A stretch of DNA of 64,000 nucleotides from Vicugna vicugna (taxonomy: Eukaryota), in the NCBI GenBank assembly GCA_013265495.1, contig MU057719.1, positions 186,001 through 250,000 of the forward strand, in the 5' to 3' direction. The notes below the pieces were generated by a model that was not told where the DNA came from, ran no database searches, and was given only the letters and a program-made list of their open reading frames with translations. Position 1 is the stretch's first letter; each line of letters opens with the position of its first letter. A program made the translations under genes and the position numbers. Shown here piece by piece: positions 20,575 to 21,847 of this stretch.

Positions 20575-21682
20575 TGAAATGGGATGAAATCTGCAGCCCG
20601 GGGACTCCGCCAGGAGACAGTGGGAGAGAGGCAGGCAGACACAAGCCACGTGCGGACCACGGGAGCAGCCACAGTGCAGAATGGACCACACGGATCCTGA
20701 CCCCAGACAGCACCTCCCAACCCCACGAGGCCCCGGGCATGAGACTCAGAGAGATGCGGCCCATCCCAGACCCCAGGGTGGATGCAGACCAAAACCTAGA
20801 GAAGACGCCCAGAACACAGGAGCCATCAAACCTGCAGAGGGGGAGACAGAGACCCCCAGACAGCAAGGGGAGGCGAGGAGCCCCCTCTGGGCTTCCACGC
20901 TGCCTGCCCCCACCCACCCCGAATAAATGTCCTCAATGAAATGGGCCCATAAACCCAAGCCCGAGAGGCCCACGGCCCGTCCCTCTACTGTGAGGACCTG
21001 GGGTCACCAGGCACTCTCACCCAGGCTCACAAGAGCAAGCAGAGCATGGGATGGCCTGGCACCCAACAGGCTTAGGGACATCCTGATGGACGTCCTGATG
21101 GTCTTATTAGAGTTCCCTGCCCTCCCACCCCTGAGTCAGCACTGTCCCCTCCAGGACGTGACCGTCTCCTCACCCAGCAGAGCACCAGGCCCCAGGTGCA
21201 CCCACTCTCCTGGGCTGGCTGCCTCCGGTGACCCCCTACCCCCCACCTCCAACCTCGGCCCTCGATGTGTTTCTGCCTCTCCACCTTCCAGAGCCCACGC
21301 ACCTGGCCCGGGCCCACTACGACCTTGAAGAGGCCTTGACCAATGCCTGTCCCCAGCGGGGCCGGGAGCAGCCCGCAGGCAGGACCAAAGTTGTGTCTCC
21401 TCTAACCCAGAGCCTGGCATACAACAGACACTCAGTAAAGGCACGGTGGGTGAGCCCACAGCCCAGGGGACAGGCTGCCAGCACTGCGGCAGCTGCCTCT
21501 GGAGGGAGTGCGCGCCCCGTCATCAAAGGTTCGCAAACGCGACGGCCACCACTGGAGGTCTGCACAGCTGCCGAGTCTAGGGCTGGACCCTGTGCTCCAG
21601 GAGCCCGGGCCACGCCACGAGGGGGCCTGTGGGAGGCGGCCCCGCCCACTCATCCGCGGCCCGCCTCGCGCCTCCCTCCCAC

Positions 21683-21847
21683 CTCAGGCCAGGCACTTCT
21701 GGTAGCGGCAGTACTGGCAGCGGTTGCGCTGCCGCTTGTCGATCAGGCAGTCCTTGTTGTCCCGGCAGGTGTAGCTCAGGTCCTTGCGCACCGTCCGCTT
21801 GAAGAAGCCCTTGCAGCCCTCGCAGCTGTACACCCCGTAGTGCTTGC
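21683..21847 (-). CDS. RXRA: RXRA exon 4 (DBD) with disrupted 3' end
   Basis: Acceptor cag|GCAAG. The first 161 nt (21847-21687) encode [53 protein letters not shown]. Then TGA (21686-21684), G, and GTGGGA (possible donor at 21682). The expected 19 nt for MGMKRE(A) are absent, so the 3' boundary is uncertain. Confidence 0.93.

Follow-up and report, generated by a model that had tools for sequence, protein, structure and literature searches.

The window analysed here, a 64,000-nucleotide stretch of Vicugna vicugna contig MU057719.1, carries exons 2–10 of the nuclear receptor gene RXRA (NR2B1), all on the minus strand. Exon 2 (27800–28065; 266 nt) encodes part of the AF-1 region and is bounded by the acceptor cttgcag^AC and the donor CAG^gtaagt (a caret marks the exon–intron boundary throughout), and exon 3 (22196–22346; 151 nt) encodes the end of AF-1 and the first zinc finger between cctcag^CTC and TCA G^gtgagg. 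Downstream of exon 4 (21683–21847), exon 5 (13670–13839; 170 nt) starts with CC GTG CAG and encodes the hinge region, exon 6 (10317–10446; 130 nt) encodes the start of the ligand-binding domain, and exon 7 (8674–8806; 133 nt) encodes a further part of that domain. These are followed by exon 8 (7373–7464; 92 nt), exon 9 (5713–5818; 106 nt), and the coding part of exon 10 (3970–4117; 145 nt and a TAG stop), which ends in APHQMT before the stop. At exons 2, 3, and 5–10 the AG/GT sites are all canonical and the phases conserved; the length of exon 4 is the only structural deviation. The window also contains two runs of N. One, of 132 nt (27808–27939), lies wholly within exon 2 with the reading frame kept across it, and looks less like a gap in the assembly than like a mask placed deliberately over conserved coding sequence; the other, of 140 nt (22825–22964), is in intron 2, with its distance to exon 3 downstream being about 0.5 kb.

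The encoded protein is strongly conserved outside the end of exon 4. Spliced exons 5–10 form an open frame of 259 codons, the protein of exons 6–10 is identical to reference RXRA fragments, and all 43 residues of exon 7 that align with human RXR-alpha chains are identical to them. Between exon 5 and its counterpart in another mammal, 5 of 168 nt differ, none of them altering an amino acid, and the three residues of the hinge that depart from the human-type sequence (G, K, and V; exon 5) recur in the frames of other species. Searches against Pfam identified the AF-1 domain of RXR in exon 3 (Nuc_recep-AF1, PF11825; E-value, 1.8e-10) and the hormone-receptor domain PF00104 in exons 6, 8, and 10, as expected for the RXR-alpha ligand-binding domain; the RXR-type two-finger zf-C4 DNA-binding domain, including CQYCRYQKC, is likewise present. 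A pseudogene would be marked by several lesions, lost introns, and relaxed constraint; here the introns are present and the lesion in exon 4 is the only defect seen in the gene. An earlier reading of the window, made from the letters alone (the sequence-only reading), had described all other exons as intact and had taken this pattern to argue against a pseudogene. Both statements hold, the former from the canonical splice sites and the latter from the single lesion and from ligand-binding-domain exons that are protein-identical to those of other mammals.

Exon 4 as assembled encodes the rest of finger 1 and the whole of finger 2, running to …QKCLA and then to a stop. It shares with the canonical mammalian exon its acceptor (cacag, with the exon starting at 21847), its phase, and a GT donor in the orthologous phase (phase 1; 21681–21682), whose context GAG^GTGGGA is that of a usable splice site. 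On the minus strand its 3′ end reads CAG AAG TGC CTG GCC TGA G^GT GGG AGG GAG G, with GTGGGAGGGAGG coming directly after …GCC TGA G. The in-frame TGA (21684–21686) stands immediately 3′ of the coding sequence for zinc finger 2, in place of the codon for M198 (human numbering), and the codons for MGMKRE, with which the T-box and C-terminal extension of the DNA-binding domain begin, are missing from the assembled gene. Thus, the exon has 165 nt (161 nt and TGAG) against 180 nt in orthologs, the last 19 nt of the ortholog-type exon, comprising the MGMKRE codons and the G of the split codon, being represented by TGAG with a net loss of 15 nt. Over its 53 complete codons, 52 of the 53 residues are identical to human RXR-alpha DNA-binding-domain chains (E-value, about 5e-33). 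The residues align to positions 150–202 of the full-length chain 3dzu_A; under an assumed 5-residue tag offset in that chain, the last residue encoded is A197 and the missing ones are M198–E203 in human numbering. The letters of the minus strand from 21847 to 21683 bear out the sequence-only reading, which had reported AAG TGC CTG GCC TGA G after 161 intact nucleotides; its assignment of the loss to M198–E203 agrees with the 3dzu_A alignment under the same assumed offset, and its description of a net loss of 15 nt that keeps the phase and carries an in-frame stop is reproduced by the exon lengths and the position of the donor. Sequence coding for MKRE is found nowhere else in the window, including as a displaced piece in intron 4, and a search of the 2.03-Gb assembly (12,405 pieces) for a second copy or haplotig of exon 4 returned paralogues only.

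The sole mismatch to the human chains within exon 4 is a Thr-to-Ser replacement in the DNA-binding domain (DLSYTC for DLTYTC; 21774–21776, AGC on the minus strand). Among the related frames that were read, Ser occurs at this position otherwise only in RXRs in which …KECLVDK, DCLVDK, DCVIDK, or DCMVDK comes next, and those receptors look non-mammalian. The replacement may reflect a substitution in this lineage or a further error in the bases. The same segment varies in a Logan contig containing RXRA exon 4 of another mammal (L021), which reads TIRKDLVYTC where RXRA elsewhere has TVRKDLTYTC, that is, with two changes within the otherwise invariant stretch between the fingers.

The end of exon 4 is highly uniform among homologs. 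In the related reading frames of other vertebrates that were read, [M/T]GMKRE is kept in 116 of 119, and in these 116 it is followed by G^GT; of the remaining three, two are single-residue variants and one is evidently a mis-model. In the RXRA contigs of four other mammals (L021, L022, L030/L031, and L036), the exon has 180 nt and ends with ATGGGCATGAA(G/A)CG(C/G)GAAG^GTAGG. Within the same genome, RXRG (L010), RXRB (L011), and an NR2C-type gene also have a 180-nt exon that ends with …GM(K/R)(R/M)E and one base before the GT, and two COUP-TF-type genes have the same exon ending and donor, their upstream boundary having been assumed by the script and not being a canonical acceptor. These four mammalian contigs and the paralogues of the same genome confirm the 180-nt orthologous exon with an MGMKRE end that had been proposed beforehand. 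In the two-finger DNA-binding domain, similarity is lower for the RXR-beta and RXR-gamma loci of this genome (91% and 96%, respectively). Contigs of this species did not turn up in the protein and contig collections searched, and look-ups through neighboring reading frames likewise gave nothing. Protein searches with exons 4 and 5 gave no match that carries the intron flanks of the window; the nearest relatives found have only about 70–78% intron identity, and none of the contigs searched spans exon 5 to exon 4.

The shape of the lesion is compound. Judging from the alignment, no single contiguous deletion converts the ortholog-type 19 nt into TGAG, and at least two events are needed, for example, deletions of 1 and 14 nt or of 7 and 8 nt. 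Therefore, a consensus or gap-closing glitch fits the change better than one mutation does. A search for sequencing runs turned up 14 DNA runs from the same organism, four RNA runs, and a sister organism. The intron side of the junction is well supported: 4 of 4 sampled 31-mers of 21600–21685 (86 nt) are present in 19 runs of 8 studies; several of these studies concern the main organism, and three related organisms are represented as well. The start of intron 4 is therefore genuine, which identifies the GT at 21682 as the orthologous donor and limits the defect to the final exon bases. The same result indicates that the locus can be sequenced with short reads and that the assembly is accurate on the intron side. 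A metagenome scan with a 29-mer from the intron start gave no match.

We also considered a second alignment, made with MAFFT, in which GTGGGAGGGAGGCGCGAGG is set against the orthologous exon end with 13 of 19 matches (VGGRRE against MGMKRE), most of the differences being changes to G. On this basis, 21659–21685 might be a garbled, low-quality version of the exon end, degenerate but of full length. This candidate was rejected because all four 31-mers of 21600–21685 occur in the 19 runs, the probability that all four miss the suspect 27 nt being about 6.5%.

The GC content around the end of exon 4 is 72–84%, and a G-quadruplex-like run (GGGAGGGAGGCGCGAGGCGGG…GTGGG; 21645–21680, minus strand), identified as a pattern match only, starts two bases past the donor. 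Such a run at the donor could cause polymerase or consensus trouble, or could equally promote mutation. The sequence-only reading had called this segment gap-prone as well as GC-rich, and in the former respect it is not borne out: no proneness to gaps is visible there, and the window's two N runs are 1.1 kb and 6 kb away. Further into intron 4, a block of ~50 nt (21489–21540; minus strand, …TTTGCGAACCTTTGATGACGGGGCGCGCACTCCCTCCAGAGGCAGCTGC) is conserved in the contigs L030, L031, and L036, whose intron sequence on either side agrees with that of the window at only about 70%; this block may be a regulatory or splicing element.

If the assembled sequence is real, GAG^GTGGGA would be the donor used. 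Because exon 5 begins with CC GTG CAG, exon 4 has to contribute one base to the split codon, and this restricts the ways in which splicing could rescue the frame. Splicing at the GT dinucleotides that precede the TGA would yield exon lengths of 14, 16, 56, 133, and 151 nt, none of which keeps the phase with an exon 5 starting CC GTG, in accordance with the earlier remark that no cryptic donor upstream restores the frame; in-phase GC dinucleotides, used as donors, would remove the final cysteine of finger 2 or more. Splicing at the retained donor would leave the stop 4 nt short of the exon 4/5 junction, with five junctions farther 3′, and by the usual rule the mRNA would probably be a target of nonsense-mediated decay. 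Any protein made would consist of AF-1 and the two zinc fingers, without the T-box, hinge, and ligand-binding domain. One could suppose that the stop is bypassed, by recoding of the TGA or through a non-canonical donor, and that a working protein is still produced. Nothing was found in favor of either route, the splice options above speak against a non-canonical donor, and a read-through product would still lack five of the six MGMKRE residues, which are conserved in nearly all homologs read; we regard such a bypass as extremely improbable.

It is most likely, with a probability of roughly 0.8 that builds on a prior artefact rate rather than a measured one and on the comparative evidence, that exon 4 ends as it does in this assembly through a local error of assembly or consensus, the inference that the sequence-only reading had also preferred. 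In that case, the true DNA of the animal would read GCC ATG GGC ATG AAG CGN GAR G^GTGGGAGGG…, giving a 180-nt exon that encodes MGMKRE, the true exon end being the 19 nt (ATGGGCATGAAGCG.GA.G) ahead of GTGGGAGGG, and reads would be expected to disagree with the assembly at this point. Several considerations favor an error. The missing codons are kept almost everywhere among the homologs compared, the lesion is single in a gene that is otherwise perfect, and the site adjoins GC-rich sequence and the G4-like run. Draft assemblies contain many lesions made by error, especially in GC-rich exons, and single-lesion 'losses' of constrained genes in such assemblies are usually errors. The lesion resembles these in being the only one, in an essential gene otherwise perfectly conserved and in GC-rich sequence, and differs from them in being a 19-to-4-nt replacement, not a 1-nt indel. 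Speaking slightly against an error is the reproduction of 21600–21685 in 19 runs, which means that the site is not simply an unsequenceable GC-rich patch; neighboring sequence that is itself unsupported, as might accompany an artefact, is not what was found. Following this explanation, the gene would be a normal, functional RXRA.

The principal rival is a real truncating allele, produced by a complex deletion–insertion at the donor side of exon 4, probably heterozygous and private or rare. The lesion is, after all, in the assembly, where a second, intact copy is lacking; many samples confirm the flanking intron, which makes the local assembly accurate in other respects; both the donor GT and the phase are preserved; and the G4-like motif at the site could favor deletions. 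Weighing more heavily on the other side is a very low prior for such an allele in a strongly constrained gene that is embryonic-lethal when null, as well as the requirement for at least two mutational events within 19 nt and the 259 downstream codons, in which nothing points to a relaxation of constraint. Mice null for Rxra die before birth, as embryos, and a homozygous null in a living, sequenced animal is therefore implausible. A real allele at this site is thus unlikely, and it is equally doubtful that a natural RXRA truncating allele segregates as a recessive embryonic-lethal in this South American camelid-type animal. Compared with the engineered Rxra-null alleles of the mouse, such an allele would be alike in abolishing the ligand-binding domain and most of the receptor function; it would differ in being spontaneous and carried by a live animal, hence heterozygous, whereas the mouse alleles were engineered and are lethal when homozygous.

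That the lineage lost canonical RXRA long ago and fixed the loss, either as a unitary pseudogene or by reduction to another isoform, is far less probable still. The one point in its favor is that several related organisms share the 31-mers of the neighboring intron, and these are uninformative on the junction itself; the other exons and splice sites are intact, the ligand-binding-domain protein is identical to that of other mammals, no second lesion is present, and the gene is essential in mice. All readings besides the artefact and the real truncating allele, taken jointly, deserve only a small weight.

Should the end of exon 4 be an assembly or consensus error, the matter is one of annotation only: gene predictors would call RXRA truncated, of low quality, or lost here, and screens for gene loss should leave the RXRA of this assembly uncounted. 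A real lesion would mean that a livestock species carries a spontaneous null allele of a master partner in nuclear-receptor heterodimers; such an allele would have relevance to embryonic loss in breeding and would provide a natural heterozygous model.
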